Sequence record: NC_042116.1
DNA length: 64,000 nt
Strand: one strand, 5' to 3'
This document shows, in pieces, positions 2,302-59,327 of the stretch. Every line of letters begins with the position of its first letter. The stretch's first letter is position 1. The notes under the pieces are model-generated. The model worked only from the letters and a program-made list of their open reading frames with translations. It did not search any database and had not been told where the DNA came from. The translations under genes were made by a program, and so were the position numbers.

Positions 2302-2330
2302 TGGAACAGGAAAAAATGTTCTGGTATAAT
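2302..2330 (+). promoter_or_regulatory. TGRAAY-N17-TATAAT promoter (TGGAAC, extended -10)
   Basis: tggaac 2302-2307, 17-nt spacer ending tgg, tataat 2325-2330. Confidence 0.75.
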
Positions 2331-2382
2331 AGAGGCATCCTAATGAGAAGTTAGGGTGCTTTTTTTATACATGGAGAACCAT

Positions 2383-2685
2383 ATGAGCAAGAAAACTGAA
2401 TCTAAGATCGAAGCACATGATTTAAATGATGTACAACGTAAAAAATTGAAAGATGGTTTAAATTCCGCAGTAGTTCAACTGTCTCACCTAGATACTCTTA
2501 AAGAATCATATGCTGATTTTATGGATACTTTAGCAGATGAAATTGGTCTTGACAAGGGTAAATTGAAAACAGCAGCAATGCGTATCTATAAACAAGATTT
2601 CTTTGATAAAGTACGTGCACAAGATGAAGTAGAAACAATTTTAACCGTATCTGGTAATTTATCAACACCAATGGATGATGAATAA
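2383..2685 (+). CDS. T4 DsbA/GapR-like dsDNA-binding protein (start revised to ATG 2383)
   Basis: About 100-aa helical protein; DTLADEIGLDKGKLKTAAMRIYKQD resembles T4 DsbA (DELGVDGKMFNRLLALYHKD); GGAG precedes 2383. Confidence 0.5.
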   Translation: MSKKTESKIEAHDLNDVQRKKLKDGLNSAVVQLSHLDTLKESYADFMDTLADEIGLDKGKLKTAAMRIYKQDFFDKVRAQDEVETILTVSGNLSTPMDDE

Positions 2686-2690
2686 AAAAA

Positions 2691-2720
2691 TAATGCCTCA
2701 ATGATGAGGCATTAACTTTT
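2691..2720. terminator. Intrinsic terminator-like hairpin
   Basis: taatgcctca-atga-tgaggcatta with A-run before and T-run after. Confidence 0.7.
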
Positions 2721-2746
2721 AAGTACGTGAATTATAAGGAGATAAG

Positions 2747-5700
2747 ATGTATATAGATGGATATATGGAACGAAAGAGGACAAAAGAAGTCCTTCACGTG
2801 GCTGAACGTGTTAATGGTAAACGTATTTTGCGAGAAATTGAACCTGTTTATGAGTATTTTGTAGAATCTCCATCAGGAACATTCAAAACTATCAATGGTA
2901 CTATGGCTGAAAAGTTTGAATTTACTAGACATCATGAAATGAAGCAAACTATGGAGAAATTACCTAGTACTGCAAAGATTTATGAATCTGATTGTAATGT
3001 TACATTTAAAACTTTAGCAAAACACTATATGGGTAAGCCATCTCCAGATTTAAATATAGTATTTTTCGATATCGAAACTGATTTTCATCCAAAATTTGGA
3101 TATGCATCTCCAAGTGATCCTTTCAACCGAGTAACTGCAATTTCTTTATATCAAAGCTGGACAGGAAAGGACTATGTTCTTACAATGGCACCTTCTGATA
3201 TGGATAATGTAGAAGCACAAGATATTATCAACCGTTTGAACCACGAAACTAATGACCCTAACAGTACTGTATTGTTATATACAGATGAAGCTGAAATGTT
3301 TTCGGATTTTTTCGATTTGATTGAAGATTCTGACATTTTATCAGGATGGAATAGTGAATTTTATGATATTCCTTATATGGTTAATAGAACTCGTAAGATA
3401 TTCAACGAAGCGACTTTAGCTAGATGGTGCTTGTGGAATCGAAAGCCAAATGCTCGTGAAGCTGATATGTTTGGTAAAACTATTGTAACATATGACCTAG
3501 TTGGTCGTGTACACTTAGATTATCTTTCATTATATAAGAAACATGCTGGTCAAGTAGAACAATCTTATAAATTGGACTATATTGCTGAAAAAGTAACTGG
3601 TGAAAACAAAGTTTCATATGATGGTTCATTGGATAAGTTGTATCGAGAAGATTACTTAACGTTTTTACGTTATTCTAAACAAGATAGTATTCTATTAAAG
3701 AAAATAGATGATAAGATGGACTTCATTAATCTACATAACCGATTGGCTCATAAAGAATGTGTACTTATTAGTACTACAATGGGTTCAGTGGCATTGATTG
3801 ATACTGCTATCATTAATCTATCTCATAAACGTGGTGAAGTAGTATTCAATAAACGAAAACTTGATGATGAAGATGAAAGTTATGATTATCAAGAATATGA
3901 AGATTATGATGATGAGGACGAAGACGACGAACCAAAAGCAGGATCGAAAGCCGCAGGTGCATGGGTACAAGATCCAGTACTTGGATTAATTGACTTCTTG
4001 GGTTGTATTGACTTTAACTCATTATATCCAACAGTATTACGTGCGTTAGGTATGAGTACTGAATGTATTCTTGGACAATTGCGTCAAACATATACTGATG
4101 CATATCTTGCTGAACGTATTGATGAACAACGAATGAAATTCCGTGGAAGAGGTAAATTTGAACCTAAATGGACTGAAGCATGGCATGGTTTATTTGCTAG
4201 TGTTGAATTTACAATGGTTCGTGAGAAATCAGACGATATTATCACTGTAGATTTGGAAGATGGTTCATCATTCCAAGCATCTGGTGCAGAATTATATGAT
4301 ATTATATTTGGTGAAGATAGTACTATAGTATTAAGTGCTAATGGTACATTGTTTGATAAAACCAAGTATGGTGTAATTCCTGAAATTCTTACTATTTGGT
4401 ATTCTGAACGTAAAGCTCAGCAAAAAATGGTAATCGATTACAAACATCTTGCAACGGATGGTTGGGAATTAGCAAGTGAAATTGTTTCTGAATTAGAAGA
4501 AGCATTAAAATTATTACAATATGGTAATAGTTTGCATAAAACGAACTTACATGAAGACGACCCTGTATATCTTATTAGATTAGCATTGGGATCTGGTGAT
4601 ATAAGTTCAGCAGCTAAGATCATTGCTGATAATGGTATGCGTTTTGAAGGTGGTAAGTTGTATTCACCTGAAGAAGATAAAAAGTACTGTAAAGTTCAAT
4701 CATCTTTCTGGAAACAGAATCAACAAATCCGTAAAATTTTGTTAAACTCACTATATGGTGCGTTATTGAACAAAGGTTCTAGATTCTTTGATAAGAGATT
4801 AGGTCAATCAGTAACCTTAACGGGTCGTAGTATGACTAAACACCTTGCAAGTAAGATTAATGAAGTATGTACTGAAAATTATGATCATGGTGGTGGTGTA
4901 GTTGTATATGGTGATACCGATTCTGTGTATTTTAGTGTAGCACATTATTATAAAGAGAATGATATTTCATTTGATTTATCTAAAGAAGAAGTAATTGAGC
5001 TATATCAAATGATTGGTGATACAGTAGGTTCATCATTCCCATCATTTATGGATGAAACCTTTAATACTGGTATAGATAATGGTAAAATTGTAGGGGCTGA
5101 TCTGGAAATGGTAGGTTCTCGTGGTCTATTTTTGAAAAAGAAACGCTATGCTATACTAAAATATTGGGAAGATGGTTTCCGTTTAGATGTTGAAGGTAAA
5201 CCTGGAAAAGTTAAAGCAATGGGTCTTGAAATTAAACGTTCAGATACACCAAAATACATTCAAAATTTCTTAGAAGACACATTAACATCATTGCTTGTTG
5301 GGTCAGAAGAAGATGTATTACGTGCGAAAGTTCGTGAATTCAAAAAGCTATTCAAAGATCGTCCTTCATATGAGAAAGGTCAACCTAAAACCGTTAAAAA
5401 TTATTCTAATAAATTTAAAGAATATGAAGAAACTGGTAAATGTAGAGTTGGACATGTTCTTGCAGCAATACAATGGAACAAATTACGTACTATATATGAT
5501 GATATGACTGTTCCAGAAGCAACTGATGGAACTAAAGTTATAGTTTGTAAGTTAAAACCAAATCCATATGGTATTACATCGGTTGGCTATCCTATTGACT
5601 GTACCGAATATCTACCAGAATGGTTTTTATCATTACCATTTGATGACGATGATATGGAAAAAGCAGTACTAACTAAAAAATTAGGAAATATATTTGGTAT

Positions 5701-5773
5701 TTTGGATATGGACTTGGCTATTGATGAAAAAAGTTCAATTGAATTGAATACTGGTTTCCTAGAGTGGATATAA
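2747..5773 (+). CDS. gp43: Family B DNA polymerase (T4 gp43-like) with 3'-5' exonuclease
   Basis: ExoI FFDIETD, ExoII GWNSEFYDIPY, motif A IDFNSLYP, motif B KILLNSLYG, motif C YGDTDS. Confidence 0.97.
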   Translation: MYIDGYMERKRTKEVLHVAERVNGKRILREIEPVYEYFVESPSGTFKTINGTMAEKFEFTRHHEMKQTMEKLPSTAKIYESDCNVTFKTLAKHYMGKPSPDLNIVFFDIETDFHPKFGYASPSDPFNRVTAISLYQSWTGKDYVLTMAPSDMDNVEAQDIINRLNHETNDPNSTVLLYTDEAEMFSDFFDLIEDSDILSGWNSEFYDIPYMVNRTRKIFNEATLARWCLWNRKPNAREADMFGKTIVTYDLVGRVHLDYLSLYKKHAGQVEQSYKLDYIAEKVTGENKVSYDGSLDKLYREDYLTFLRYSKQDSILLKKIDDKMDFINLHNRLAHKECVLISTTMGSVALIDTAIINLSHKRGEVVFNKRKLDDEDESYDYQEYEDYDDEDEDDEPKAGSKAAGAWVQDPVLGLIDFLGCIDFNSLYPTVLRALGMSTECILGQLRQTYTDAYLAERIDEQRMKFRGRGKFEPKWTEAWHGLFASVEFTMVREKSDDIITVDLEDGSSFQASGAELYDIIFGEDSTIVLSANGTLFDKTKYGVIPEILTIWYSERKAQQKMVIDYKHLATDGWELASEIVSELEEALKLLQYGNSLHKTNLHEDDPVYLIRLALGSGDISSAAKIIADNGMRFEGGKLYSPEEDKKYCKVQSSFWKQNQQIRKILLNSLYGALLNKGSRFFDKRLGQSVTLTGRSMTKHLASKINEVCTENYDHGGGVVVYGDTDSVYFSVAHYYKENDISFDLSKEEVIELYQMIGDTVGSSFPSFMDETFNTGIDNGKIVGADLEMVGSRGLFLKKKRYAILKYWEDGFRLDVEGKPGKVKAMGLEIKRSDTPKYIQNFLEDTLTSLLVGSEEDVLRAKVREFKKLFKDRPSYEKGQPKTVKNYSNKFKEYEETGKCRVGHVLAAIQWNKLRTIYDDMTVPEATDGTKVIVCKLKPNPYGITSVGYPIDCTEYLPEWFLSLPFDDDDMEKAVLTKKLGNIFGILDMDLAIDEKSSIELNTGFLEWI

Positions 5774-5784
5774 AAGGAAAATAT

Positions 5785-6237
5785 ATGAATAACTATGACA
5801 ATCTTTTTCAAAGAATTGGAGAAGCATTAACTTCTGGTGGTGAATATAACATTATTCGTGCTAATGATGATAATGAAATTGCCATTTTGAATAATGCTGG
5901 ATTTGTACAAATTGGATCTATGAAAGATGGAGACACTATAGTGTCTCTATTTAAAATTGAGTTAAAAGCAAAAGAAGTTATTAAAATAGTAGAAGTACCT
6001 ACTAAACTATCACCACCTTGGAATAATTCTCCAATTGATCGTCAACCATTTTGGGATAATTCACCAAATGACCGTCAACCTTACATAACTAATACTCCAC
6101 ATATAATGTATAGTACTGGAACTGGTGATACATCAGAATGGATGTATAAAAAATACAACAATTCTGTAGATCTTACTTTATCAACAGAACTATACAAATT
6201 AGCAACTCTTAAAGCACCTAAACATAATAATACTTAA
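5785..6237 (+). CDS. Hypothetical protein (start revised to ATG 5785)
   Basis: ORF with AAGGA SD; no recognisable motif. Confidence 0.6.
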   Translation: MNNYDNLFQRIGEALTSGGEYNIIRANDDNEIAILNNAGFVQIGSMKDGDTIVSLFKIELKAKEVIKIVEVPTKLSPPWNNSPIDRQPFWDNSPNDRQPYITNTPHIMYSTGTGDTSEWMYKKYNNSVDLTLSTELYKLATLKAPKHNNT

Positions 6238-6243
6238 AATTTT

Positions 6244-6272
6244 TGAAACGTATACAATTAATCTGGTATAAT
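6244..6272 (+). promoter_or_regulatory. TGRAAY-N17-TATAAT promoter overlapped by a 14-bp perfect inverted repeat
   Basis: tgaaac 6244-6249, tataat 6267-6272; IR arms 6247-6260 and 6269-6282. Confidence 0.75.
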
Positions 6273-6303
6273 TGTATACGTTAACAACATGGAGAATTAA
6301 CAA

Positions 6304-7035
6304 ATGGAATTACGTGACGTACTACGCGACCTAGTAACTACAACTGCTGGAATTGATTTTGATTGTATCGCTATTTCTAGTGAAGATCGGGGTCAAGGTC
6401 AACGAATTTATATGGAAGCATATACTGGCGATAAAAACTTAGTTATGAGAGCATATACTAAGGAAGATGTACCTGAAGTTGTTGGGCGTTTTGGTATTGG
6501 TAATCTTGGAATGCTTCAAGGTCTATTAAATCTAAATGTTTACAAATCAGAAAGTACTAAAATAAGTGTGAATGCAAAAGATGGTATTGTAAAAAGTCTT
6601 TCATTTGCTTCAGACGATGCAAACACCAACTATCTAGTAGTTGCAGAAAAATTTATTCCACCTCAACCACGTTTCACTGACAAACCATATGACGTACAGG
6701 TTACACCTAGTGCTTCAAAAGTCAATGAGCTAAAAAGCTTCTCAGGAGTGTTTAAATCATTCACTGCTCACGTTACTCCCTTTACTGAGAACGGAAGTTT
6801 GTATTTTTACGTAGGTGAGAAGAATAAAAATAACCATACAGGTACATTATTATTCTCTAAAACAGATGGTGAGTTATCTCAAGGTTATGGCTATCCTATT
6901 GAACGTGTTCTACAAGCATTGAACCGCGTATCCAATGCTGAACAAAAATCAATTGGGATTACCAAAACTGGTATGTTTAATGTAACAGTAGATACTGGTA
7001 TTGCAGTTTATAGCATCTATGTAAGTGGTTGCTAA
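6304..7035 (+). CDS. Putative sliding clamp (gp45/PCNA-like)
   Basis: 243 aa with a two-domain alpha/beta pattern, GxFGIGNLxxL motif and terminal FNVTVDTGIAVYSIYV strand, close to PolB; judged by eye. Confidence 0.6.
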   Translation: MELRDVLRDLVTTTAGIDFDCIAISSEDRGQGQRIYMEAYTGDKNLVMRAYTKEDVPEVVGRFGIGNLGMLQGLLNLNVYKSESTKISVNAKDGIVKSLSFASDDANTNYLVVAEKFIPPQPRFTDKPYDVQVTPSASKVNELKSFSGVFKSFTAHVTPFTENGSLYFYVGEKNKNNHTGTLLFSKTDGELSQGYGYPIERVLQALNRVSNAEQKSIGITKTGMFNVTVDTGIAVYSIYVSGC

Positions 7036-7043
7036 TATTTTAC

Positions 7044-7066
7044 ATGGGGGTTTATCCCCCATTTTT
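7044..7066 (+). terminator. Intrinsic terminator
   Basis: atggggg-tttat-cccccat followed by T-run. Confidence 0.7.
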
Positions 7067-7079
7067 ATTGGAAAAAATA

Positions 7080-7694
7080 ATGAGTACCCCAAGATTTATT
7101 GCTGATACCCATATGGGTCATAGAAATATATGGAAATTTAGACCAGTTTTTGAAAGTACCTTACACAACGATTTGTATTTCCAATATGTACTGGCTGAAA
7201 TTTGTACAAAACGAGATTCAATGTTCTTTTTAGGTGATATTCTTTTTGATGAAAAATACTTACCATTTATTAAAGAATTACCTGGTACTAAAATTTTAGT
7301 ACTTGGAAATCATTGTACTGAATATATTAGTACTAAAAAATTATGTGATGCATTTGATGAAGTTCATTCAATGATTCGATATAAAGAATTTTGGCTAACT
7401 CATGCTCCTATACATCCAGATGAATTACGTGAAAAGAAAAATATTCATGGACATGTTCACACTGAATCTATAAATGATTTTAATTATTTAAATGTATCAG
7501 TAGATAGTTCATTTATGAATTTTTTACCTAAGACATTACTAGAAGTTAGACAGGCATTTGCTACAGTAAATACAGAGCAAAAGATTTATGCTGGTGTTGA
7601 TAATGAAAATGCACTTAATGTTATAGAGAGTAATCCTATTTCAAAAAATGCATATTATAGATCACTTGCTGAGTCAAGAAAAATAACTGTCTAA
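7080..7694 (+). CDS. Calcineurin-like metallophosphoesterase (start revised to ATG 7080)
   Basis: Motifs DTHMGH, LGD, GNH, THAP, HGHVH. Confidence 0.9.
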   Translation: MSTPRFIADTHMGHRNIWKFRPVFESTLHNDLYFQYVLAEICTKRDSMFFLGDILFDEKYLPFIKELPGTKILVLGNHCTEYISTKKLCDAFDEVHSMIRYKEFWLTHAPIHPDELREKKNIHGHVHTESINDFNYLNVSVDSSFMNFLPKTLLEVRQAFATVNTEQKIYAGVDNENALNVIESNPISKNAYYRSLAESRKITV

Positions 7695-7703
7695 GGAGTA
7701 GAT

Positions 7704-7913
7704 ATGCCATTATATACATATCGTTGTTCTATTGAAGAATGCGACCATAGTGTAGAAAAGATTGTAAAAATTGCAGATCGTGAAGCTACCACGCTTGATT
7801 GTCCAGAATGTGGTACTGAAAAAAGTATGCAATATGAAACATTCACACCAGGTGATAAAGGTAGTAATTTATATTTCAGAGGGAATTGGTTTGCCAATAC
7901 AGGCGGCTATTAA
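7704..7913 (+). CDS. FmdB-family zinc-ribbon protein
   Basis: MPLYTYRCxxxxC...CPECG signature. Confidence 0.8.
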   Translation: MPLYTYRCSIEECDHSVEKIVKIADREATTLDCPECGTEKSMQYETFTPGDKGSNLYFRGNWFANTGGY

Positions 7914-7932
7914 AGTTGATTGGAGTTAATAC

Positions 7933-8938: not shown

Positions 8939-8967
8939 AAAAAGGAGAACATAATGTTCTCCTTTTT
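8939..8967. terminator. Bidirectional terminator between convergent genes
   Basis: aaaaaggagaaca-taa-tgttctccttttt, 13-bp perfect stem. Confidence 0.8.
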
Positions 8968-8980
8968 CGTTTTTATAATA

Positions 8981-9637: not shown

Positions 9638-9653
9638 ATTTTAGTCCTCCTTA

Positions 9654-10330: not shown

Positions 10331-10337
10331 TCTTTAA

Positions 10338-10366
10338 TGAAACCAACCCCAAAAATGTGGTATAAT
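10338..10366 (+). promoter_or_regulatory. TGRAAY-N17-TATAAT promoter
   Basis: tgaaac 10338-10343, spacer ending tgg, tataat 10361-10366. Confidence 0.75.
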
Positions 10367-15560: not shown

Positions 15561-15589
15561 TGGAACATTATATTAAAATATGGTATAAT
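15561..15589 (+). promoter_or_regulatory. TGRAAY-N17-TATAAT promoter (ssb P1)
   Basis: tggaac 15561-15566, tataat 15584-15589. Confidence 0.75.
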
Positions 15590-15648: not shown

Positions 15649-15677
15649 TGAAACGTATCATGAAATTGTGGTATAAT
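15649..15677 (+). promoter_or_regulatory. TGRAAY-N17-TATAAT promoter (ssb P2)
   Basis: tgaaac 15649-15654, tataat 15672-15677. Confidence 0.75.
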
Positions 15678-19395: not shown

Positions 19396-20880
19396 ATGAG
19401 TGGAATTTGTAAGTTAATACTTCAGGATGAAGTAAATTGTAAATTTGAGGGACTTGCCCCTAATATTAGGCAAGAAATGATTCGTAAAGTATCATTTGTA
19501 TTACCTTATGCTAAATTTACTCCTGCTGGAAAAATGGGCAGATGGGACGGTAAAGTTAATTTTATGAATATAGGTGGAAGCACTTATTATCATATGTTAG
19601 ATCAACTTTTACCAATTCTTGAAAAGCATAATATAATGATTGAAATTGATGATCAACGTATTACACATGATTTTGAGTTTGAGCCAATTGATGAAAATAT
19701 TTTTGATTATGTAGAATTCCCTTCTGGACATCATATGGAAGGACAAAAAATTATTTTACGTGAACATCAAGTAAATGCAGTAAATTCATGTCTTGAAAAT
19801 AGACATGGACTGCTATTAGCAAGTACAAGTTCAGGTAAAACATTAATTACTGCTGCAATGTCTAAAAGTGTTGAAAAATATGGTAGAAGTATTGTAATTG
19901 TTCCTAATAAAGATTTAGTACAACAAACTTACAATGATTATGTAATGGTCGGTTTAGATGCGGGTGTATTTTATGGTGATAAAAAAGAATTAAACCATCA
20001 ACATACTATCACCACATGGCAATCGTTAAACTCTTTATGGAAAAAAACAAAAAAAGGTGAAATTGCATTAACTGAACAAGATATTAGTGATTTTATCAAT
20101 GGTGTAGTTGCTGTTGTAGTTGATGAAGCACATACTAGTGCGGCAGAAGCCTTACATGCAGTACTAGGACAAGTAATGAAAAATATTCCATTACGTTGGG
20201 GATTAACTGGTACTATTCCTAAAGATCCAGTACTTGCAGCGAAAATAAAATGTAATGTTGGTGAAATTATATATACTATATCAGCAAAAGAGTTGCAAGA
20301 TAAACAAATTCTTAGTACTTGTAATGTAAATTGCATTAGATTGAAAAGCTCTTTAAAATTTGGTAATTATCAAGAAGAATTAAAATATCTAGTAACTGAC
20401 AAAACTAGAATGAAGTATATTGCATCAATAATTGCAGCTATTGCAGAATCTGGTAATACCTTAGTATTAGTTGATAGATTGGAAGCTGGTGAGTTATTGT
20501 GTGAATTCTTAGGTCTACCAACATCAGAATTCGTTAGAGGTGACACTAAGAAGAAAGATCGTGAAGCATCATATGGTGAAATTCGCTGGGCTGATAATAA
20601 AATACTTATTGCAACATATGGTGTGGCTAGTACTGGTATTAGTATTAGTCGTTTATATAATGTAGTACTTTTAGAACCTGGTAAAAGTTTTGTAAGAACT
20701 ATTCAGAGTATAGGCCGTGGACTTCGACGTGCAGAAGACAAAGATCACGTAGAGATTTATGACATTTCAGGTTTCAATAAGTTTAGTGCTAAGCATTCTC
20801 GTGAAAGAATGACGTACTATAAAGAAGTACAATATCCATATCACGAAATGATTGTGGAAAATTGGGAAAATATGGAATGA
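19396..20880 (+). CDS. uvsW: SF2 DNA helicase UvsW
   Basis: STSSGKT, VVVDEAH, GLTGT, ATYGVASTGISI, QSIGRGLR. Confidence 0.95.
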   Translation: MSGICKLILQDEVNCKFEGLAPNIRQEMIRKVSFVLPYAKFTPAGKMGRWDGKVNFMNIGGSTYYHMLDQLLPILEKHNIMIEIDDQRITHDFEFEPIDENIFDYVEFPSGHHMEGQKIILREHQVNAVNSCLENRHGLLLASTSSGKTLITAAMSKSVEKYGRSIVIVPNKDLVQQTYNDYVMVGLDAGVFYGDKKELNHQHTITTWQSLNSLWKKTKKGEIALTEQDISDFINGVVAVVVDEAHTSAAEALHAVLGQVMKNIPLRWGLTGTIPKDPVLAAKIKCNVGEIIYTISAKELQDKQILSTCNVNCIRLKSSLKFGNYQEELKYLVTDKTRMKYIASIIAAIAESGNTLVLVDRLEAGELLCEFLGLPTSEFVRGDTKKKDREASYGEIRWADNKILIATYGVASTGISISRLYNVVLLEPGKSFVRTIQSIGRGLRRAEDKDHVEIYDISGFNKFSAKHSRERMTYYKEVQYPYHEMIVENWENME

Positions 20881-20901
20881 AAAGATTTTTTATGATATAA
20901 T
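20873..20901 (+). promoter_or_regulatory. TGRAAY-N17-TATAAT promoter
   Basis: tggaat 20873-20878, spacer ending tga, tataat 20896-20901. Confidence 0.7.
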
Positions 20902-25772: not shown

Positions 25773-25801
25773 TGGAATGAGCTAAAAAAATGTGGTATAA
25801 T
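25773..25801 (+). promoter_or_regulatory. TGRAAY-N17-TATAAT promoter (primase-helicase)
   Basis: tggaat 25773-25778, tataat 25796-25801. Confidence 0.75.
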
Positions 25802-31878: not shown

Positions 31879-32214
31879 ATGAGGTTCAATCAGATAACCG
31901 AAGATGCACCTGGTAAAGATATACGGAATATGATTAGTACTATTGCATTATCATTAATTGCAACAGGTAGAGAACAAATTAGTATACAATCATTGATTAA
32001 TGAAATAAAAAAGCGTACTAATATTGATGTTCCATATAATGTAATGATGGATATTCTTAATGAACTTCCATTTGTACAAGATGCAAATTCTGATATGGTA
32101 AACTTACAAGGTACTGATACTTCACCTGATGGTGATAGTATTGAATCACCTGAAGAACAAGTAACTGATATGGCAACAAAAGCAGCATCTGCAAATTTAA
32201 AACAAGATATTTGA
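31879..32214 (+). CDS. Hypothetical virion-associated protein
   Basis: MRFNQITE| N-terminus like 48106 (MKYNQLNE|). Confidence 0.55.
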   Translation: MRFNQITEDAPGKDIRNMISTIALSLIATGREQISIQSLINEIKKRTNIDVPYNVMMDILNELPFVQDANSDMVNLQGTDTSPDGDSIESPEEQVTDMATKAASANLKQDI

Positions 32215-32240
32215 AACAAACGAAAAACATGTGCTATAAT
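32212..32240 (+). promoter_or_regulatory. TGRAAY-N17-TATAAT promoter
   Basis: tgaaac 32212-32217, spacer ending tgc, tataat 32235-32240. Confidence 0.75.
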
Positions 32241-37357: not shown

Positions 37358-38065
37358 ATGTCAGTATTCAAAATTAATACAAAAAGTCACTTAGAAAAAA
37401 ATATGTTTTTCGATGAATCTGTTGATATTCAACGGTTTGAATCGTTGAAATATCCAGCAATTGAAAAACTAACAGAATCACAAAAAGGATTCTTTTGGTC
37501 ACCAGATGAAGTAGATCTATCTAAAGATCGATTAGATTTTAAAACACTTACAGATCATGAGAAACATATTTTCACATCTAATCTAAAACGTCAAATTCTA
37601 CTTGACTCAGTACAAGGTCGTGGTCCCAATTTAGTACTACTACCATATGCGTCACTACCTGAATTAGAAAACTTTATTGAAACATGGGCATTTTTTGAAG
37701 GTGCTATCCATAGTAAATCTTATACACATATTATTCGCAACGTATATTCAAATCCATCTGAAGTTTTTGATACAATGCTTGACATTCCAGAAATCACAAG
37801 CTGTGCCGCAGATATTTCAAAGTACTATGATGATTTAGATTTATATGGTACTTATTACCGTTTACTTGGTGAAGGTACTCATACAGTTAATGGTGAAAAA
37901 ATTATCATTGATTTGTATGAATTAAAGAAGAAGTTGTGGTTATGTTTGAATTCCATCAACATCTTAGAAGGAGTTCGTTTCTATGTGAGCTTTGTATGTT
38001 CCTGGGCTTTTAGTGAAATTGAAAAGATGGAAGGTAATGGTAAGATTATCAAATTGATTTGCCGT
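37358..38065 (+). CDS. nrdB: Ribonucleotide reductase small subunit, exon 1
   Basis: GFFWSPDEVDL, LLDSVQGRG, IHSKSY (radical Tyr), EGVRFY, ends MEGNGKIIKLICR. Confidence 0.95.
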
Positions 38066-38160
38066 TAATTTGAGCGGCCTTGTATAGTAATATACATTGA
38101 ATAACCCTATATATCGGTGAAACTCTTAACAAGTAATGTTGAAGACAATACCGAGATTTT

Positions 38161-38198
38161 TATAAATATCCATATGAGATGAAAACATACATGTGGAG
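38161..38198 (+). promoter_or_regulatory. Intron-internal late promoter TATAAATA and SD-sequestering hairpin for the homing endonuclease
   Basis: TATAAATA 38161-38168; tccatatg (38169-76) pairs with catgtgga (38190-97) covering the GGAG SD. Confidence 0.7.
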
Positions 38199-38205
38199 TA
38201 TTTGA

Positions 38206-38943
38206 ATGAAAGATGATTTTTACGTATATATTTGGTATAACCCTGAAAACAATAAACCATTTTATGTTGGAAAAGGAACTGGTAAAAGAGCATATGATGT
38301 AAATGATAAAAGCCGAAATGCTTTCTTCATGAGAAAGTACAATAAAATTAAAAGTACTGGCTTAGATCCATATGTTATTATTGAATATGATAATTTATCT
38401 GAGAGTGATGCACTCGCAAAAGAACACGAATTAATATTAAAATACAAACCTACATTTGAAGGTGGTATTTTAACAAATTTGTCATATTCAACTGGTGGAA
38501 AATCAACAATATCAGAAAGTACAAGAGATAAATTATCTCATAAATCTTCAGGTGAAAAAAATGGAATGGCTAGATTCACTAAAGAAGAAATAGTGGAATG
38601 CTTTGAACTGTTGATTAAAGGTTATAGTAATAAAGAAGTTGAGAAAGAAACTAATATACCGTCACATGTAATATCTGATTTACGATATGGTAAAAAGTGG
38701 AAAACGGTATATGAAATTTACAAAAACAAACTGGTAAATCTTAAAATATCTGGCTTGAATAAATATAATTTGTCATTTGAAGATAAAGTTAATATTATAC
38801 ATGATATTGCAACCAGAGATAAAAATACTCAACTTAAAGATATAGCAAAGAAATATAATGTAAAAGAAACCATGATTGTTTCCATCAATTTAAAAAGACA
38901 GTGGAAAAATATATGGCAATATTATCTTGATAAAAAATCGTAA
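38206..38943 (+). CDS. Intron-encoded GIY-YIG homing endonuclease with C-terminal HTH repeats
   Basis: FYVYIWY...FYVGKGTGKR, conserved E and N; two HTH-like C-terminal repeats; stop codon overlaps the P6/P7 junction. Confidence 0.9.
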   Translation: MKDDFYVYIWYNPENNKPFYVGKGTGKRAYDVNDKSRNAFFMRKYNKIKSTGLDPYVIIEYDNLSESDALAKEHELILKYKPTFEGGILTNLSYSTGGKSTISESTRDKLSHKSSGEKNGMARFTKEEIVECFELLIKGYSNKEVEKETNIPSHVISDLRYGKKWKTVYEIYKNKLVNLKISGLNKYNLSFEDKVNIIHDIATRDKNTQLKDIAKKYNVKETMIVSINLKRQWKNIWQYYLDKKS

Positions 38944-39108
38944 CGACTATCGAAACCACATAGAGATATGGAAGGGAGTAGAGTACTCTCAAGCGAGGGG
39001 AAACGTAGGGAATCCAGAAATGGATTATGATATAGTCTGGTCTATATAGAAATATATAGCAGCTTGGATAAAGCGGAGATAGATTAGCGAACTATCTTGA
39101 ACATCACG

Positions 39109-39525
39109 GATGAGAACTTACACTTAGCAGCAACACAAATGATATTACGTTTGCTAAAGAAAGAAGATCCTGATTTTGCTAAAATAGCAGAAGAATGTCA
39201 TGATGAAGTACAACAAATGTTCTTAGATGCTATTCAGCAAGAAGAAGAATGGGCAGACTTCTTATTCAAGGATGGTTCTATAATTGGTCTAAACGCACCA
39301 ATTCTAAAACAATATATTCGTTGGATTGGTTGTAAGAGAATGAGTGCTGTGGGTATTAAATGTCCGTACAGTATTAGTCAGAATAACCCTTTACCTTGGA
39401 CGACGAGTTGGATTAGTGGTGCAGATGTACAAGTAGCTCCACAAGAAACTGAAATTAGTTCATATATCATTGGTGGTGTAGTTAATGACATTTCTGAAGA
39501 ATCTTTTAAAGGTTTAGAAATATAA
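39109..39525 (+). CDS. nrdB: Ribonucleotide reductase small subunit, exon 2
   Basis: Begins DENLH (iron ligands), ends VAPQETEISSY; spliced product 374 aa. Confidence 0.95.
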   Translation, partial: DENLHLAATQMILRLLKKEDPDFAKIAEECHDEVQQMFLDAIQQEEEWADFLFKDGSIIGLNAPILKQYIRWIGCKRMSAVGIKCPYSISQNNPLPWTTSWISGADVQVAPQETEISSYIIGGVVNDISEESFKGLEI

Positions 39526-39776: not shown

Positions 39777-39805
39777 TGAAACAGAAAAAAAAATTATGGT
39801 ATAAT
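39777..39805 (+). promoter_or_regulatory. TGRAAY-N17-TATAAT promoter
   Basis: tgaaac 39777-39782, A9 in spacer, tataat 39800-39805. Confidence 0.75.
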
Positions 39806-42645: not shown

Positions 42646-42674
42646 TGAAACGGATGAAAACAATATGGTATAAT
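42646..42674 (+). promoter_or_regulatory. TGRAAY-N17-TATAAT promoter (DHFR-RNase HI-Dda operon)
   Basis: tgaaac 42646-42651, tataat 42669-42674. Confidence 0.75.
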
Positions 42675-52142: not shown

Positions 52143-52151
52143 GGCAAATCA

Positions 52152-52517: not shown

Positions 52518-52520
52518 ATA

Positions 52521-52550
52521 TAACGATGCAGAAATGCATCGTTATTTTTT
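52521..52550 (+). terminator. Intrinsic terminator
   Basis: taacgatgca-gaaa-tgcatcgtta plus T-run (GNRA loop). Confidence 0.8.
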
Positions 52551-52579
52551 TGGAACAAAGAAACAAATTATGCTATAAT
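52551..52579 (+). promoter_or_regulatory. TGRAAY-N17-TATAAT promoter (topoisomerase operon)
   Basis: tggaac 52551-52556, spacer ending tgc, tataat 52574-52579. Confidence 0.75.
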
Positions 52580-52612
52580 ATATTGGCTAAGAAACAATAA
52601 AAGGAATTAGAA

Positions 52613-54601
52613 ATGGCAAAGGAAAAGAAAAGTTCTGTTCTCGCTGAACATGGTGTTCAACAATTAACTGAATATCAACATGCACGTATCCGTACTGAAA
52701 TGTACTTAGGATCAAAATCAGAACATGAACAACCAGTTCTTCTCTTTAGTGAAGATGGTTATACTGTGCAAAATTTAGGTTGGGTTCCTGCCCTACTAAC
52801 TTCATTCCGTGAAATCGTGGATAACTCATTAGATGAATTTGTTAAAGCTGGAACAAAAGATCCAGTACTAAAAGTATCATATAATGAAAATGAACTTGAA
52901 TTCGAAATTAGCGATAATGGTCGTGGTATTCCGATTGATTACGTACCTGAAACTCTTAAACATGTTTGTACAATGGTACTAACAGAGATGAAAACTGGTC
53001 GTAACTTCAATGATGATGAACGTAATAATGTTGTTGGTATGAATGGTCTTGGTGGTTCAGTTGTTATGATTGTTAGTGAAAAAGCTGAGATCGAAATACA
53101 TAGAACCGGAAAACCATATAAGACTGATAAATCAAATACTGAATATGATGGTATGTATAAATTCACACAGAAGTTTACAGAAGGAACTCAAATGTTCCCT
53201 GAACTTGGTATTGAAGAACCAAATATTCGTAAAGTGAAAGCAGATAAAACTGGAACAACAGTTAGATTCAAAATAAGCAAAGAAGTATTCAAAGTACATA
53301 CATTACCTATTCAGTTAGTGTATAGCATTCTTAAAGAAGTTGCGGCAGCTAACCCAACATATAAAATCTTTTTGAATGATCAACGCATTACAGTTAATAA
53401 GAAAGGTTTATTCTCTGCTGCAAAAAACACAATGATTCTCAAAGTTGATGATAATGAGACTGGACTAGATAGTACTTTCTACATTGTACCAAACGTAGTT
53501 GAGGGTCTAAGCAAGAACTTACATATGCAAGGTCTTGTTAATAATGCTCCATCATTAGAAGGTGGAACACACTTAGATACATTCCAACAAAAATTTGCAT
53601 TAGGTGTTATTAATGCATTGGATAGAGTACCTAAAAATAGAAAACGCAATTTAAAACCTAATCGTTCTGATATCGAAGAAGGATTGTTGATTTATAACAT
53701 CACAAAGATGAATACCCCAACTTTCAACTCTCAAATCAAAACGAAGCTAACTAATGAAAATGTCATCAAGCCAGTGCAAAATGCAATGAGTGATGATTTC
53801 TTTAATGAATTAGTGAAGAAAAACACTGATTGGATTGAAGAAATTTATACTAGATGTGCTGAGCGTACAAATAAAAAAGATGCTGATGAAGATCGTAAAA
53901 TGGCAAAACGACTATTAAAAGGAAAAGTTGCTAAATTACGAGATGTAAATGATACTAAACCAAGAAGCGAATGTATTCTTTTAATTGCTGAAGGTGATTC
54001 AGCAGTAAGTTCAATGACAGCAGCTAGAAATTCTTCTATTCATGGGATTTTACCTTTGCGTGGTAAAATACAAAACGTAAATGGAAGAGAGAAAACTAAA
54101 GATCTTATGGGTACTGCGGATAAACCATCAGCAATTCATGACATTATGGCATCTCTTAATATTGTTCCTGGAGAAAAAGCTATCAGATCCAATATGAACT
54201 TTGGTAAGTTATATATTTGTGCCGATGAAGATGAAGATGGTAAAAATATTGGTGCGTTAGTAGTAAATTTCTTTTATAAGTTCTGGCCTGAATTATTTGA
54301 AGATACTTCAAATCCATTCATTTACATTTTCAAAACACCATTTATTATTTTGGAAAAAGGTAAAGAATCAAAGTACTATTATGGTCACAACGTTCATGAA
54401 TACAATCCAGATGATTGGAAAGGATGGAAAGCGACTCGTGCTAAAGGTCTTGGGACTCTTGAAGTTTCAAACTTTAGAGATGCACTTGCTAATGGTGTTG
54501 CAATAGCAATAACCGATGATGGGTCATTAGCAGAAACATTGGATTTAATTTTCAATAAAGACCGTGCTGATGATCGTAAAGAATGGACTAAAGAAGACTA
54601 A
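52613..54601 (+). CDS. Type II DNA topoisomerase ATPase/TOPRIM subunit (T4 gp39+gp60 equivalent in one chain)
   Basis: EIVDNSLDE, DNGRGIP, GMNGLGG, EGDSA, PLRGK, DEDEDG, KGLG. Confidence 0.95.
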   Translation: MAKEKKSSVLAEHGVQQLTEYQHARIRTEMYLGSKSEHEQPVLLFSEDGYTVQNLGWVPALLTSFREIVDNSLDEFVKAGTKDPVLKVSYNENELEFEISDNGRGIPIDYVPETLKHVCTMVLTEMKTGRNFNDDERNNVVGMNGLGGSVVMIVSEKAEIEIHRTGKPYKTDKSNTEYDGMYKFTQKFTEGTQMFPELGIEEPNIRKVKADKTGTTVRFKISKEVFKVHTLPIQLVYSILKEVAAANPTYKIFLNDQRITVNKKGLFSAAKNTMILKVDDNETGLDSTFYIVPNVVEGLSKNLHMQGLVNNAPSLEGGTHLDTFQQKFALGVINALDRVPKNRKRNLKPNRSDIEEGLLIYNITKMNTPTFNSQIKTKLTNENVIKPVQNAMSDDFFNELVKKNTDWIEEIYTRCAERTNKKDADEDRKMAKRLLKGKVAKLRDVNDTKPRSECILLIAEGDSAVSSMTAARNSSIHGILPLRGKIQNVNGREKTKDLMGTADKPSAIHDIMASLNIVPGEKAIRSNMNFGKLYICADEDEDGKNIGALVVNFFYKFWPELFEDTSNPFIYIFKTPFIILEKGKESKYYYGHNVHEYNPDDWKGWKATRAKGLGTLEVSNFRDALANGVAIAITDDGSLAETLDLIFNKDRADDRKEWTKED

Positions 54602-54655
54602 TACATTAATGGGGTACAGTTGAAGTACCCCAATAGTAACAAAGAGGCAAATGGA

Positions 54656-56065
54656 ATGCGTAAACCTAAAAAAATTATAGAAATTGTTCCTAACGAACTA
54701 ACACTTTTGGACTTCCAAAGTTCAGATTATATAAACCAATCATCTCTTGAGTATGCATTAAGTACTTTTGATCGTTCTCTTCCAGGAATTGATGGTTTTA
54801 AAAATTCACAAAGAAAAGCTATTTTCACACTAAGTAAAATAAGCGGAGAAATTAAAACTGTATCATGTGCAGGGCGTATGATTAGTGATGGTATATACCT
54901 TCATGGTGATGTATCAGCTAGTGGAACTTTACAAAATTTGGCAAGTCCAGTAGTTAATAATTATCCGTTAATTGGAAAACGTGGTGGTTTTGGTACACAG
55001 GTTAATCCTGAACCAGCTAGTCCACGATATACTTATGTGAAGAAAACAAAAATAACAGAATCATTAGTACTAAGGGATTTAGATGTGGTTCCAATGCAAG
55101 AGAATTATGATGGAACTACAATGGAACCTAAGTTCTTTTTACCATTAATTCCATTAGCATTACTTGGAGTAGATGGAACAGCAACAGCATATAAAAGTTT
55201 CATTTTTCCATACAGAATGAATGATATTATTGATAATACTATACGTGTTATTAATAGTGAAGATTTACTTCCGATGGTTCCATATTATGCTAGTTATGGT
55301 GCAAATGACTATGTTGAAGACCGTGGAGAAGGTAAGTATACGTTCTTTGGTAAAGCAGAAGTAATTGATGCAAGTACTGTAAGAATTACTGGTTTATCAC
55401 CACGAATGAAATTAGAAAAATTCATTGAAGAATTAAATGAAATGGAAGATTCTGGAAAAATTCGCGGATATAATGATGACAGTTCAGGTAAAGTTGATAT
55501 TACTATAAAACTACCTAGAGGTCTTGCAGTTTCATGGACAGAAATGGATGTAATTGAGTATTTTGACATTTCAACTAAATTGGCACATACCCTTAACGTT
55601 TTAGGTGAAAATGGAAAAGTAAAAAGTTACAACGATGTTCGAGATATTATTCACGACTTCGTTCAATTCAGATTCAAGTACTACATTAAGCGTTATGAAA
55701 AACTTCTTTCTAATGCAGATGCAGAAGTTCGGTATAAAATTTTAGTGAAAGAATGTTTTGATAACGATATGATAGTAAAAATAAAATCATTTGAAAATCG
55801 TGGTGAAGTTGTAGACTTTGTAACATCTTTAAATAAAGAAATTGAAGCATCTGATGATAATATTCAAAATATCATAAACTTTCCTAGCTATCGTTGGACA
55901 AAAGAAAACTACGATAAAGTACTTCAAGAAATTGAAGAAGCATTGGAAAAAATGGATGAATATAATGATTTGCTTTCTAATCATGATAAAATATGGAACA
56001 TTTATAAACAAGAACTTATGGAATTACGTGACATGAATATTGTATATAGAGAAGATACTGAGTAA
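54656..56065 (+). CDS. Type II DNA topoisomerase cleavage subunit (T4 gp52-like; start revised to ATG 54656)
   Basis: DGFKNSQRK, YLHGD, ASPRY catalytic Tyr; GAGG SD before 54656. Confidence 0.95.
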   Translation: MRKPKKIIEIVPNELTLLDFQSSDYINQSSLEYALSTFDRSLPGIDGFKNSQRKAIFTLSKISGEIKTVSCAGRMISDGIYLHGDVSASGTLQNLASPVVNNYPLIGKRGGFGTQVNPEPASPRYTYVKKTKITESLVLRDLDVVPMQENYDGTTMEPKFFLPLIPLALLGVDGTATAYKSFIFPYRMNDIIDNTIRVINSEDLLPMVPYYASYGANDYVEDRGEGKYTFFGKAEVIDASTVRITGLSPRMKLEKFIEELNEMEDSGKIRGYNDDSSGKVDITIKLPRGLAVSWTEMDVIEYFDISTKLAHTLNVLGENGKVKSYNDVRDIIHDFVQFRFKYYIKRYEKLLSNADAEVRYKILVKECFDNDMIVKIKSFENRGEVVDFVTSLNKEIEASDDNIQNIINFPSYRWTKENYDKVLQEIEEALEKMDEYNDLLSNHDKIWNIYKQELMELRDMNIVYREDTE

Positions 56066-56072
56066 TTTATAT

Positions 56073-56100
56073 AAGGACGCATAATGCGTCCTTTATTTTT
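56073..56100 (+). terminator. Intrinsic terminator (AAGGACGC family)
   Basis: aaggacgca-taa-tgcgtcctt plus T-rich tail. Confidence 0.75.
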
Positions 56101-56158
56101 AATCGTATACATATAATAAATACCACAAAGCTTTTTATGTTTTTGGAGATAATAATAT

Positions 56159-58519
56159 ATGGCGAATTTCGAACCCAAATGGGATTTGATAGCTGATACC
56201 AATTCGATTAAAGAAGGACAGACTACTTATTTTAGATTACGAATTTCTAAAAGTCAACTTATTTCACCTAACGATGAATATGTACTTGATGATGACCAAT
56301 ATCTTGAATTTACATTTAATATTGTAGGTGCAGGAGAAACATTAGAAGAAAGAGATTTTAACGTATCTATAGGTGAAAGTACTTCAGAATTAATTCCTAT
56401 TGGAGAAGCAGGAACAGGCATCCCACACATTCAGGGAACGCACGTAGTAAAATTAAGTAGAAAAGATTTCCAATTGAGTTCAAGTATAACCTTTATTGAT
56501 GCATTCTTTTTTAAAATAGAATGTCCACAAGACGGAACATGGGATGGACCAGAATCATTAACATTTAATATTGATAGCATAAATGAAATCACATTATTAG
56601 ATGGACAAATTGCCAATACAGTTCCGAGTGGAATTGTGGGAATTAGTACTCAAATTTTAAATTATAATACTGAAGATGAAGTTTGGGTTACTCCCAACTT
56701 AACAACACATGGTGATAATCTATATACTATTGGTGGTATTGGATATGGATCTGAAAGTAGATTATATATTCAAGCATTTGGAAGAAGTGAAACTATAAAT
56801 GGGATTACTAATATTTTTATGCCAGCATATAAAATTGAAAAAATCACTATAGCTGATATTCCCAATGAACACATAACTGGTTCAGGTACTATTTTTATAC
56901 CTGTAGGAGTTGAGGAAGAATCTAATGTTTCAATTTTGGATACTATAGGTAATACAGTACAATCAGGATTAAAATTTAATGCTAACGGTCAGTTAGTACA
57001 AACATTAATATATGATTCTGAACCAATAGATACTTATTTTAAAGCTTCAATTGTGTCTATTACTAGTTATTATAATACACCACAAGATGCATATTTCATT
57101 GGTAAAAGATTTAGAGCATACCAAACATGGGTTTGTCCAACTAATATTACAGATTTTTATGGTGCAGTAAAGCCAAATCATATGTATCAACTTAAAGATA
57201 CTAAAGTATATCCTTATGTAGTAAAAGAAATTATTATTGAAGGAAGTACTAAAATATTATTTGAGGAAGATAAGTGGTATGATTTGGGATTATATAATGA
57301 ATCATTAGGTACTGGTATTATTGGTTCAGAAAGAATGTTTCGTGTTGTTGTAAATGATAATACTGGTACAGATATTTCTTTTGAAACTGATACAAATCTA
57401 GGTGAAATTCATGTTGGTGAATATTTTGGACATTCAGTATATCCTAAAATAATCGCTAGTGGTTCAGATTTAATAACATACCACATTGATTCAACTACTT
57501 CACCAAATGATATTACAAAATATGGATTAGATTTAACAGCAGATGGAATTGTCATTGGTGAAGCATACGCATTAAGTACTGATTTTACTGCTAATGATGA
57601 TATACCATTACAGTTTGATGTAGTCGCTACTAGTAAACTTGGTAAATCATTAACAAAAAGATTTAGATTAAGAATTATTAGAGGATTAGGACAAAACTAT
57701 TTACATGCAGATGTGTACCCATCGTTGACATTAGAACGTTCTTGGTTTAAAATGATAAGTTCAACTACATTTAGTAGAGCATTTTATTATAGGGCATCTG
57801 ACCCACGATATGGAGTAAAAACTATACCTCGTATTTTGTTAAAAGAGAACTTCGTTGATCCAACTAAAAATTGGGAAGGGATTAAACAAACGATTCTCAA
57901 TCTCAGGGCTGGAATAGTTGATACAGTTCATGGTTCACCAACACCAGATGGTTCATTTAGATTAGTACTAGGAAATTATAAAATACGTTCAGCTCTTGAC
58001 AATCAAGGAAATGTGTTGTATGATGTACTGTACAGAGAGCTACATGAAGAAGGTGTACAAGTTAATTTAAGTTTAAATCCATTGAAATATACTGATTATT
58101 CTACCTCTATAATTTCTGAGATTTTTGGATTAAGACAAAATATTTTTAATATTATAGGTGAAGATACCGTAAACTTATTAACAGATCCAACTGATTTAAA
58201 TAATCGTGGTATTGTCGTTGAACCAATCAATGGAATATCTGTCGAAATGTTAGATACAGTTCCTCGTTACATGAATCATCCATATATCGAAGATAACATT
58301 AAACCTATGTATTTCCCATGTATACCAGTTGCATACTTGCAACCAGGGCAAGGTGAAATATTGTTTAATACGATGGTACAAAATAATGAACATGGTACAT
58401 TGCTCAATACTGAATTTGAAGTATCTGGTGTTGAATTTAAATACTATACTGAAAGTACTGACAAATATGTTCAAGAAAACTTTACGGCATCATTAAAAGT
58501 GCCTAATCTATTTCAATAA
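56159..58519 (+). CDS. Large virion structural protein with Ig-like modules (baseplate/tail-associated)
   Basis: AATAAATA at 56115-56122; beta-rich; TNLGEI...GLDLTADGIVIG...FDVVATS...RFRLRI resembles putative Ig domains. Confidence 0.55.
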   Translation: MANFEPKWDLIADTNSIKEGQTTYFRLRISKSQLISPNDEYVLDDDQYLEFTFNIVGAGETLEERDFNVSIGESTSELIPIGEAGTGIPHIQGTHVVKLSRKDFQLSSSITFIDAFFFKIECPQDGTWDGPESLTFNIDSINEITLLDGQIANTVPSGIVGISTQILNYNTEDEVWVTPNLTTHGDNLYTIGGIGYGSESRLYIQAFGRSETINGITNIFMPAYKIEKITIADIPNEHITGSGTIFIPVGVEEESNVSILDTIGNTVQSGLKFNANGQLVQTLIYDSEPIDTYFKASIVSITSYYNTPQDAYFIGKRFRAYQTWVCPTNITDFYGAVKPNHMYQLKDTKVYPYVVKEIIIEGSTKILFEEDKWYDLGLYNESLGTGIIGSERMFRVVVNDNTGTDISFETDTNLGEIHVGEYFGHSVYPKIIASGSDLITYHIDSTTSPNDITKYGLDLTADGIVIGEAYALSTDFTANDDIPLQFDVVATSKLGKSLTKRFRLRIIRGLGQNYLHADVYPSLTLERSWFKMISSTTFSRAFYYRASDPRYGVKTIPRILLKENFVDPTKNWEGIKQTILNLRAGIVDTVHGSPTPDGSFRLVLGNYKIRSALDNQGNVLYDVLYRELHEEGVQVNLSLNPLKYTDYSTSIISEIFGLRQNIFNIIGEDTVNLLTDPTDLNNRGIVVEPINGISVEMLDTVPRYMNHPYIEDNIKPMYFPCIPVAYLQPGQGEILFNTMVQNNEHGTLLNTEFEVSGVEFKYYTESTDKYVQENFTASLKVPNLFQ

Positions 58520-58528
58520 GGAAAATTT

Positions 58529-58831
58529 ATGTTTCATCCATTTTTCGACCCATCATCTTTAAGTGATAAAGAACTATATGATAAAATAACTGAAGTTTCT
58601 GTTAGAATCTCTGCTGCTAGAACATCAGGGATTCAATTTGAAATTATACAATCAATGTACACATTAATTCACGCATGTGAAGAAGAGATTAGAACTAGGC
58701 AAGCTCACAAAGATCTTGAGAGTGTTTCTAAGGAAGATAATTGTGTATTTGATTCAGATAGTTATTTAAATGACAAAGATGATAAAAAGAATGAAAATAC
58801 AAAAAAACAGAACTATAAGCGAGGATGGTGA
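58529..58831 (+). CDS. Hypothetical protein
   Basis: MFHPFFDPSSLSDKELYDKI helical hairpin; AAGG SD. Confidence 0.65.
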   Translation: MFHPFFDPSSLSDKELYDKITEVSVRISAARTSGIQFEIIQSMYTLIHACEEEIRTRQAHKDLESVSKEDNCVFDSDSYLNDKDDKKNENTKKQNYKRGW

Positions 58832-59309
58832 TGTTCGTTTAGATCTGAATGCTGTTGTTTATGCTATAAACTGCGGCACAGACATTACTTATATCCAGCT
58901 TAATGAGCAAGATGAAGTTGAACGATTGAAGTTCAATGATAATTGTAAAAAATTTGGACTTACTGAACGTATGCTAGATTATAAAATAGAACATGATAAA
59001 AATCATGAACTATGGAGATATGATCCAGTATATGATAAAATCAACTTAGAAGATTATTTCCTTTCTTTATGTAGTACTGATGTTGAACGTGATCGAGTAC
59101 TATATGAATTAGGATTGTATGAAAATTATAATATGACCAAACTATTAAGATGTATGATATGGTTGGTAGATTATCTTGACGAACATAATATTTTTTGGGG
59201 ATTAGGTCGTGGAAGTTCAGTAAGCAGCTTTTGTTTGTATTTGATTGGATTACATTTGGTTGATTCAGTGAAATACGAATTAGATGTGAACGAATTTTTG
59301 AAATGGTAA
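58791..59309 (+). CDS. DnaE (Pol III alpha)-like fragment with GS motif (N-part of split mini-polymerase)
   Basis: RDRVLYEL...WGLGRGSSVSSFCLYLIGLHLVDSVKYELDVNEFLK = ERL..EL...[36 protein letters not shown]; start uncertain (58770/58779/58791). Confidence 0.88.
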   Translation: MKIQKNRTISEDGDVRLDLNAVVYAINCGTDITYIQLNEQDEVERLKFNDNCKKFGLTERMLDYKIEHDKNHELWRYDPVYDKINLEDYFLSLCSTDVERDRVLYELGLYENYNMTKLLRCMIWLVDYLDEHNIFWGLGRGSSVSSFCLYLIGLHLVDSVKYELDVNEFLKW

Positions 59310-59327
59310 AAAAAATTATGGTATAAT
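59299..59327 (+). promoter_or_regulatory. TGRAAY-N17-TATAAT promoter
   Basis: tgaaat 59299-59304, A8 in spacer, tataat 59322-59327. Confidence 0.72.

Follow-up and report, generated by a model that had tools for sequence, protein, structure and literature searches.

The DNA analyzed here, called the window throughout, is a stretch of 64,000 nucleotides (nt) from sequence record NC_042116.1, and it matches bases 186001-250000 of Yersinia phage fHe-Yen9-04 (hereafter Yen9-04) with 100% identity. Yen9-04 is a Rak2-like jumbo myovirus of the genus Eneladusvirus with a genome of 354,378 bp. Over the window, DNA identity is 87% to Serratia phage BF and several Erwinia phages, and 80-81% to Pectobacterium phage CBB and Cronobacter phage GAP32. 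Farther relatives are the 121Q/PBECO4-like, RaK2/K64-1-like and Munch/fENko-Kae01-like phages and Xanthomonas phages. The subject is a set of twelve putative promoters of the form TGRAAY-N17-TATAAT, called class II here, which an earlier note on the window had singled out as a phage-specific class preceding genes of replication, recombination and nucleotide metabolism.

All twelve sites were found where the note had placed them, on the + strand. The leftmost (2302..2330, hexamer TGGAAC, spacer ending in TGG) precedes g255, an open reading frame (ORF) of 100 amino acids (aa), and g256, a family B DNA polymerase. The product of g255 had been called dsbA-like, which is unsupported: the ORF has no significant family match, and the promoter heads the DNA polymerase gene pair. 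The site at 6244..6272 stands before g258, which is clamp-like according to a single source, an HHpred note in the record of a relative. The remaining assignments, by contrast, stood. The site at 10338..10366 lies in a divergent intergenic region before g265 (RNaseH / 5'-3' exonuclease). A tandem pair, 15561..15589 upstream and 15649..15677 downstream, precedes g270, which encodes a gp32-like single-stranded DNA-binding protein (SSB). The site at 20873..20901 is a TGGAAT variant with TGA at the end of its spacer; its -35 overlaps the end of g274 (UvsW helicase) and the gene that follows is g275. Another TGGAAT variant, at 25773..25801, precedes g283 (primase) and g284 (gp41-like helicase). Next come 32212..32240, with 14 nt to the start codon of g293 (PD-(D/E)XK exonuclease), and 39777..39805, with an A9 run in its spacer, before g302. 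The site at 42646..42674 again lies in a divergent intergenic region and heads g307-g310 (membrane protein, DHFR, RNase H and Dda helicase), 52551..52579 precedes the topoisomerase II subunit genes g320/g321, and 59299..59327, a TGAAAT variant with an A8 run, precedes g325 with its -35 overlapping the end of g324.

Dinucleotide shuffles of the window gave a mean of 0.28 matches and a maximum of 3, against the 12 observed. The window is 94.3% coding and 5.7% non-coding, and every one of the twelve sites is intergenic or overlaps the final codons of the preceding gene. The distance from the end of the -10 to the next start codon is 29-33 nt in eight of them. Allowing one mismatch, or spacers of 16 or 18 nt, produced no additional + strand site in the window. 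Because of the excess over chance, the non-coding placement and the lack of near-variants, we take the class to be real and sharply defined. The exact 17-nt spacer with an invariant TGn, claimed earlier, was borne out: in all twelve sites the last-but-two and last-but-one spacer bases are TG. Each of the twelve also carries a T two bases upstream of that TG, which was absent from the search pattern, and the downstream element is better written TnTGn-TATAAT. The spacers are A-rich overall, and three of them (25773, 39777 and 59299) contain the A7-A9 runs that had been reported.

Several individual promoters are accompanied by further structure or are kept in relatives. The 2302 site has orthologues before the same gene in CBB, fENko-Kae01 and a 121Q-like phage. 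The transcript predicted from it would start with a hairpin followed by a U-run (2331-2382), just before the g255 ribosome-binding site, and a similar hairpin and T-run follow the orthologous promoter of Xanthomonas phage XaC1; the folding z-score of the Yen9-04 leader hairpin, -1.46, is not significant on its own. The clamp-gene promoter contains an inverted repeat (6247-6282) whose 14-nt arms match perfectly and stand 8 nt apart; it extends over the spacer, the -10 and the region of the start. The orthologous clamp promoters of CBB and fENko-Kae01 likewise have inverted repeats around the -10, in other letters, and the feature looks like a conserved symmetric operator or hairpin. The two SSB promoters are 88 nt apart in a 222-nt gap before the gene, and CBB, fENko-Kae01 and the 121Q-like phage show the same two-promoter layout. 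The terminal T of the 20873 hexamer is kept at the orthologous promoter in four other lineages. Before the topoisomerase genes, a terminator-like hairpin and T-run abut the -35, forming a terminator-promoter module (52521-52579).

The genome-wide scan with a random control that the earlier note had proposed was carried out on the whole-genome record as nine adjoining pieces, each piece on its own, with the expectation taken from first-order Markov simulations. There are 41 matches to TGRAAY-N17-TATAAT, 39 of them on the + strand and 2 on the - strand, where about 2.1 are expected. The TG of an extended -10, at -15/-14, is present in 37 of the 39 + strand sites, as it is in all those of the window, and the pattern that includes it, TGRAAY-N14-TGn-TATAAT, has 37 matches, every one on the + strand, where 0.10 would be expected. 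At positions outside the pattern, these 37 sites have T at -17 in 36 cases and G at -13 in 29. The last hexamer position is C in 34, an A stands seven bases past the -10 in 21, and the spacer and upstream flank are A-rich.

These sites also show where else the class is used. Five have the end of their -10 9-23 nt before tRNA genes confirmed by Rfam, and a sixth precedes an annotated tRNA-Met. One tRNA, annotated as a suppressor with anticodon CTA, has its own class II promoter (record 292478-292596; L003:42478-42596), whose -10 ends 17 nt upstream of the tRNA. The site at record 169561 precedes g237, annotated as "sigma factor for late transcription" and gp55-like, and among the other targets outside the window are NAD-salvage genes and a gene for a Lon-like protease. 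Class II thus reaches beyond replication genes: the replication, recombination and nucleotide-metabolism targets listed earlier are mostly right, and tRNA genes and the late sigma gene have to be added to them. After the class II promoters at record 93234, 174227, 260347, 305577/305760 and 334669 there are 300-680 nt with no annotated gene, and there could be small genes or RNAs in these stretches that the annotation lacks. An Rfam scan of the 100 kb of tRNA and early regions (L003 and L004 only) found tRNAs alone and no other RNAs.

An unbiased tally, in which no motif was assumed, took the hexamer that lies 17 nt before each of the genome's 1044 TATAAT. The most frequent hexamers were TGAAAC (23), TGGAAC (12) and TTGACA (11), and every other hexamer occurred six times or fewer. 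The TGn accompanies 34 of the 35 TGAAAC and TGGAAC sites, versus 3 of the 11 TTGACA sites. A canonical TTGACA-N17-TATAAT class thus coexists with class II as a separate class in early regions of the same genome. Its sites cluster at 250-347 kb, in regions rich in small ORFs and tRNA genes, and close to the left end. Two TTGACA-type sites, 330740 and 330934, and a conserved TTGCAC-type site, 331357, are upstream of g497/g498. Downstream of the sigma operon, near record 333574 (L004:33560-33610), a terminator-like hairpin and T-run contain in their stem the -35 (TTGACT) of a sigma70-type promoter, and this terminator/-35 composite is conserved in CBB, fENko-like contigs, 121Q and EJP2.

The factor responsible for class II had been judged not identifiable in the window, and a search of the rest of the genome for sigma-like proteins had been suggested. 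That search found g498 (record 332070-333062, 330 aa, outside the window), a sigma70-family protein annotated as RNA polymerase sigma factor, which is the likely factor. It matches the Pfam models Sigma70_r2 and Sigma70_r3, and no Pfam region 4 model. Aligned with solved structures, it follows SigA, RpoD and RpoS from region 2 to residue ~290-300, which covers region 4.1 and the first helix of the helix-turn-helix; the recognition helix lies outside the alignment. Homologues of equal length number 68, from contigs of ~350 kb. A structural model built on 35 homologues gives a confident C-terminal domain (predicted local distance difference test, pLDDT, 82-92) of four helices: 252-260, 265-275, 285-291 and, after a small hairpin, a long helix at 304-324. 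A fold search with the whole protein returned group 1/2 sigmas. When a profile of the C-terminal domain was compared with all solved structures at E = 10, it matched group 1/2 sigma-4 fragments only, and no extracytoplasmic function (ECF) sigma. On the strength of the Pfam matches, the structure alignments, the model and the fold search, g498 reads as a three-domain sigma, with regions 2 and 3 and a predicted four-helix C-terminal domain, in which the part that would read the -10 is ordinary-looking and the helix that would read the -35 is private. All related genomes that were examined encode a complete sigma whose region 4.2 has diverged.

Relatives were compared via the replication region, the sigma region, or both regions. 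They have orthologous promoters in the same register and at comparable distances from the same genes: the ORF preceding the DNA polymerase, the clamp-like gene, RNaseH, SSB (tandem), g275, the primase, the exonuclease and g302. The -35 hexamer at these promoters varies by lineage, and the variation was set beside the start of the recognition helix, g498 residues 306-311. Yen9-04, BF, CBB, GAP32, four metagenomic contigs and the P0029 contig have the helix TLSRRY/L and the hexamer TGRAAC (52 sites, counted where the -10 is TGn-TAnAAT, and 0 TGRGAC). XaC1, whose sigma is 41% identical, has TLSRRY and TGAAAC/TGAAAT (9 sites, with a -10 of its own). The fENko-Kae01-like and 121Q-like phages and EJP2 have SLHRCY, SIHRKY and TIHRRY, that is xxHRxY, and TGRGAC (15 sites, with 1 TGRAAC). 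The RaK2/K64-1-like phages have TLHYKF and YTGAAC (13 sites). The P0029 contig was usable with one site, and the P0047, P0068 and P0032 contigs were too short or site-poor.

This co-variation by lineage is a direct observation. The fENko-Kae01 sigma is 48% identical to that of Yen9-04 and 39% to that of 121Q, and the sigma nearest to 121Q's is RaK2's (47%). As far as sequences can tell, the hexamer tracks the recognition helix and not the overall relatedness of the sigmas. Most hosts of the compared phages are Enterobacterales, in which region 4.2 of sigma70 is essentially invariant. Because the hexamer varies with the phage, is unaltered when the host order changes and tracks the helix of the phage sigma, the reader appears to be phage-encoded, and we infer that the phage sigma is the obvious candidate. 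The proposal that class II combines a sigma70-like extended -10 with a non-sigma70 -35 as a distinct class, with a phage-specified determinant encoded outside the window, is supported.

The -10 element has changed in one lineage. At nine orthologous promoters of XaC1 (L012, for example at 6223, 10293 and 26233) TnTGG-TATAAT is replaced by TGTTC-TATACT while the -35 TGAAAC is kept. Between the XaC1 sigma and g498 there are differences in the parts that align with regions 2.4 and 3.0. When a link between -10 differences and these two regions was explored, the His/Tyr position in region 3.0 did not track the TGn across lineages.

Our reading is that class II is probably, though by no means certainly, read by the host core RNA polymerase carrying the phage sigma g498. 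This is ranked as most likely because the hexamer follows the helix by lineage and because the TTGAC class, which was found in all lineages with informative sequence, recurs beside it. In a first step, the early regions, g498 included, would be transcribed by the host sigma70 holoenzyme; that g498 would be made first by host sigma70 is suggested by the position of its gene behind canonical TTGACA-type promoters in a small-ORF early region. In a second step, g498 would bind the core enzyme and read TGRAAC-N12-TnTGn-TATAAT. Its primary-sigma-like regions 2 and 3 would read the extended -10, TnTGn-TATAAT, and its diverged region 4, with the small hairpin insertion and the helix TLSRRY, would read TGRAAC at about -35 to -30. 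The third step would switch on some 37 promoters, those of replication, recombination, nucleotide metabolism, many tRNA genes and the gp55-like sigma gene. The gp55-like sigma would then serve late promoters of the ATAAATA type described for CBB, and the whole would be a three-step cascade. Transcript start positions and timing are predictions from this scheme, and a middle timing for class II is plausible.

A number of points weigh against this reading. A perfect TGn-TATAAT can function with host sigma70 without a -35, and the RaK2-type hexamer TTGAAC is near the sigma70 consensus. Roughly three helix states underlie the co-variation, the independent changes may number three or four, and the compared phage sigmas also differ at many positions beyond the helix. 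A co-evolving DNA-binding factor would yield the same co-variation. The P0032 contig has two sites, neither with the predicted hexamer. Within g498, the region 3.0 residue aligned with the primary-sigma glutamate is not conserved. The literature searched held no transcript 5' ends, expression timing or protein-DNA data for the clade. Finally, the virion proteome of fENko-Kae01 contains a sigma factor, which one not being stated, so the class may be active from the outset rather than in the middle of infection.

A more specific idea about the co-variation is tentative, and we lean slightly toward doubting it. It holds that the phage sigma and its whole promoter set changed together, with one or two residues at the beginning of the sigma-4 recognition helix, 308 (Ser/His) and 309 (Arg/Tyr) of g498, setting bases -32 and -34, such that dozens of promoters per genome would have been rewritten (A to G at -32) with their positions kept. 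If true, this would be a natural, readable code for -35 specificity in a sigma with host-like reading of the -10.

Host sigma70 alone might read class II, and this alternative survives best, although we consider it unlikely. The sites would then be strong extended -10 promoters, and TGRAAC would be a tolerated -35 in an 18-bp register or the site of a repressor or regulator. The ability of TGn-TATAAT to act without a -35 and the nearness of TTGAAC in the RaK2 group to TTGACA both speak for it. The -10 and the spacer fit a canonical sigma70 promoter, the hexamer TGRAAY is not TTGACA, and a weak -35 paired with a TGn is what sigma70 compensation would lead one to expect. A shift by one base (wTGRAA) turns 5 of the 12 window sites into TTGAAA or TTGGAA, but the base preceding the TG is T in only 5 of the 12 and A or C in the other 7, and the 18-bp register is retained as a minor rival only. 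The A, A and C positions, which sigma70 does not need, are nevertheless near-invariant (37, 37 and 34 of 37), and one-mismatch variants are lacking. Between phage genera with closely related hosts, the hexamer shifts in concert at orthologous promoters, TGAAAC is retained in a Xanthomonas phage, and a canonical TTGACA class coexists in the same genomes; these observations argue against a host factor acting by itself.

The second alternative, sigma appropriation, seems quite improbable to us. Here host sigma70 would read the extended -10 while a phage activator, with or without an anti-sigma-like partner, would occupy TGRAAC in place of region 4. An excellent TGn-TATAAT with a non-sigma70 element near -30/-35 is the architecture such a system would have, the phage has a T4-like set of replication and late-transcription genes, and lineage-specific hexamers are also compatible with a co-evolving activator. 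Yet no MotA- or AsiA-like product is annotated in the 354-kb record, though its proteome was not exhaustively scanned. Seven ORFs around the sigma gene gave no MotA/AsiA-like family (~520 other ORFs being unscanned), and proteins of this kind are not reported for CBB. The complete sigma in every related genome examined, with its diverged region 4.2 and a helix that tracks the hexamer, also goes against it. The earlier note had pictured a phage factor replacing the region-4 specificity of sigma; the phage-specified determinant survives from this picture, and the factor is likely a complete sigma, g498, and not a MotA/AsiA-style remodelling of the host sigma.

An ECF-type sigma, host or phage, reading TGAAAC as B. 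subtilis SigW does is very improbable: TGAAAC is indeed the SigW-type -35 consensus, but the -10 is TATAAT with TGn and not CGT-type, the only non-gp55 phage sigma has region 3 with group 1/2 sigmas as its nearest solved relatives, and the C-terminal profile found no ECF match even at the permissive threshold.

For Yen9-04 the result is a usable transcription map of about 37 class II promoters and a separate host-type early class, in which host sigma70 probably gives way to the phage sigma and this in turn to the gp55-like late sigma. Class II also includes the tRNA genes of the phage. In the relatives, sigma-4 helices and -35 hexamers form a natural set of matched pairs against an unchanging -10, which would be useful for learning how -35 specificity is encoded. 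Apart from the promoters, the gene for the small subunit of ribonucleotide reductase (37358-39525) is annotated in two pieces with one inserted ORF between them; it is a single gene in each of CBB, XaC1, K64-1 and fENko-Kae01.

The closest known system is the promoter class of CBB and GAP32. The CBB paper (Buttimer et al. 2017, PMC5259590) described "divergent RpoD-like" promoters with the -35 TGAAACG, eleven before the DNA-synthesis block CBB_258-329 and one before the gp55-like gene, and stated that the same divergent motif had been noted for GAP32 (Abbasifar et al. 2014). It also reported 18 RpoD-like promoters concentrated in an early region, where a sigma with regions 2, 3 and 4 is encoded, and an ATAAATA motif before structural genes (PMC5259590). 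The published motif, TGAAAC(G) with a classic -10, fits all twelve window sites and 37 sites genome-wide. CBB and GAP32 belong to the same clade as Yen9-04 and share its motif, and for all ten window promoters within the compared CBB stretch there is a CBB site before the orthologous gene. The DNA-synthesis block agrees site by site, a site precedes the gp55-like gene (g237 in Yen9-04), and CBB likewise has an RpoD-like class and a sigma gene in its early region. Yen9-04 differs in belonging to a different genus, Eneladusvirus, and is a further member of the clade with a known class. Since the promoter class is already in the literature, the claim that it is new does not stand, and the present work is confirmation and extension rather than discovery. 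What it adds to the CBB paper, which did not have them, is an assigned candidate reader, the invariant TnTGn, the tRNA promoters and the lineage-specific hexamers. Promoter analysis is absent from the fENko-Kae01, Eneladusvirus, RaK2 and fEgEco12 papers, and the RNA-seq paper on PA5oct gives TTGAC/TATAATA promoters only.

Two reviews state that jumbo phages without their own RNA polymerase encode sigma homologues which likely guide the core polymerase of the host to promoters of the phage. Among systems established by experiment, the nearest analogues for the proposed working are gp36 of phiEco32 and gp47 of Salmonella phage 7-11, phage sigma70-family proteins that join the host core and read phage-specific promoters while host sigma70 reads the early ones (PMC8948821). 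The 7-11 protein has a region 4, and its promoters are bipartite with a 16-bp spacer (PMC8948821). The analogy is one of working only: the proteins and motifs are unrelated to those of Yen9-04, and the phiEco32 and 7-11 promoters have no TATAAT-type -10. In Yen9-04 the sigma70-like -10 side seems to be kept and only the -35 side to be private.

T4 middle promoters combine a sigma70-type -10, often extended, with a phage element that replaces the -35, and stand before replication and nucleotide-metabolism genes. This layout is similar to that of class II, but Yen9-04 differs in having a full phage sigma and no annotated MotA- or AsiA-like genes. ECF promoters, those of SigW, SigX and SigM in B. 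subtilis, share the -35 TGAAAC with its AAC core, and the analogy drawn in the earlier note is correct as far as these letters go. Membership in the ECF family is rejected, as the -10 is wrong for it and the candidate sigma is three-domain, with a region 3, and group 1/2-like. Extended -10 promoters of sigma70 are like class II in the TG one base upstream of TATAAT and in the T that precedes it; to these Yen9-04 adds a constrained, non-TTGACA element at -35 to -30 that varies by phage lineage.

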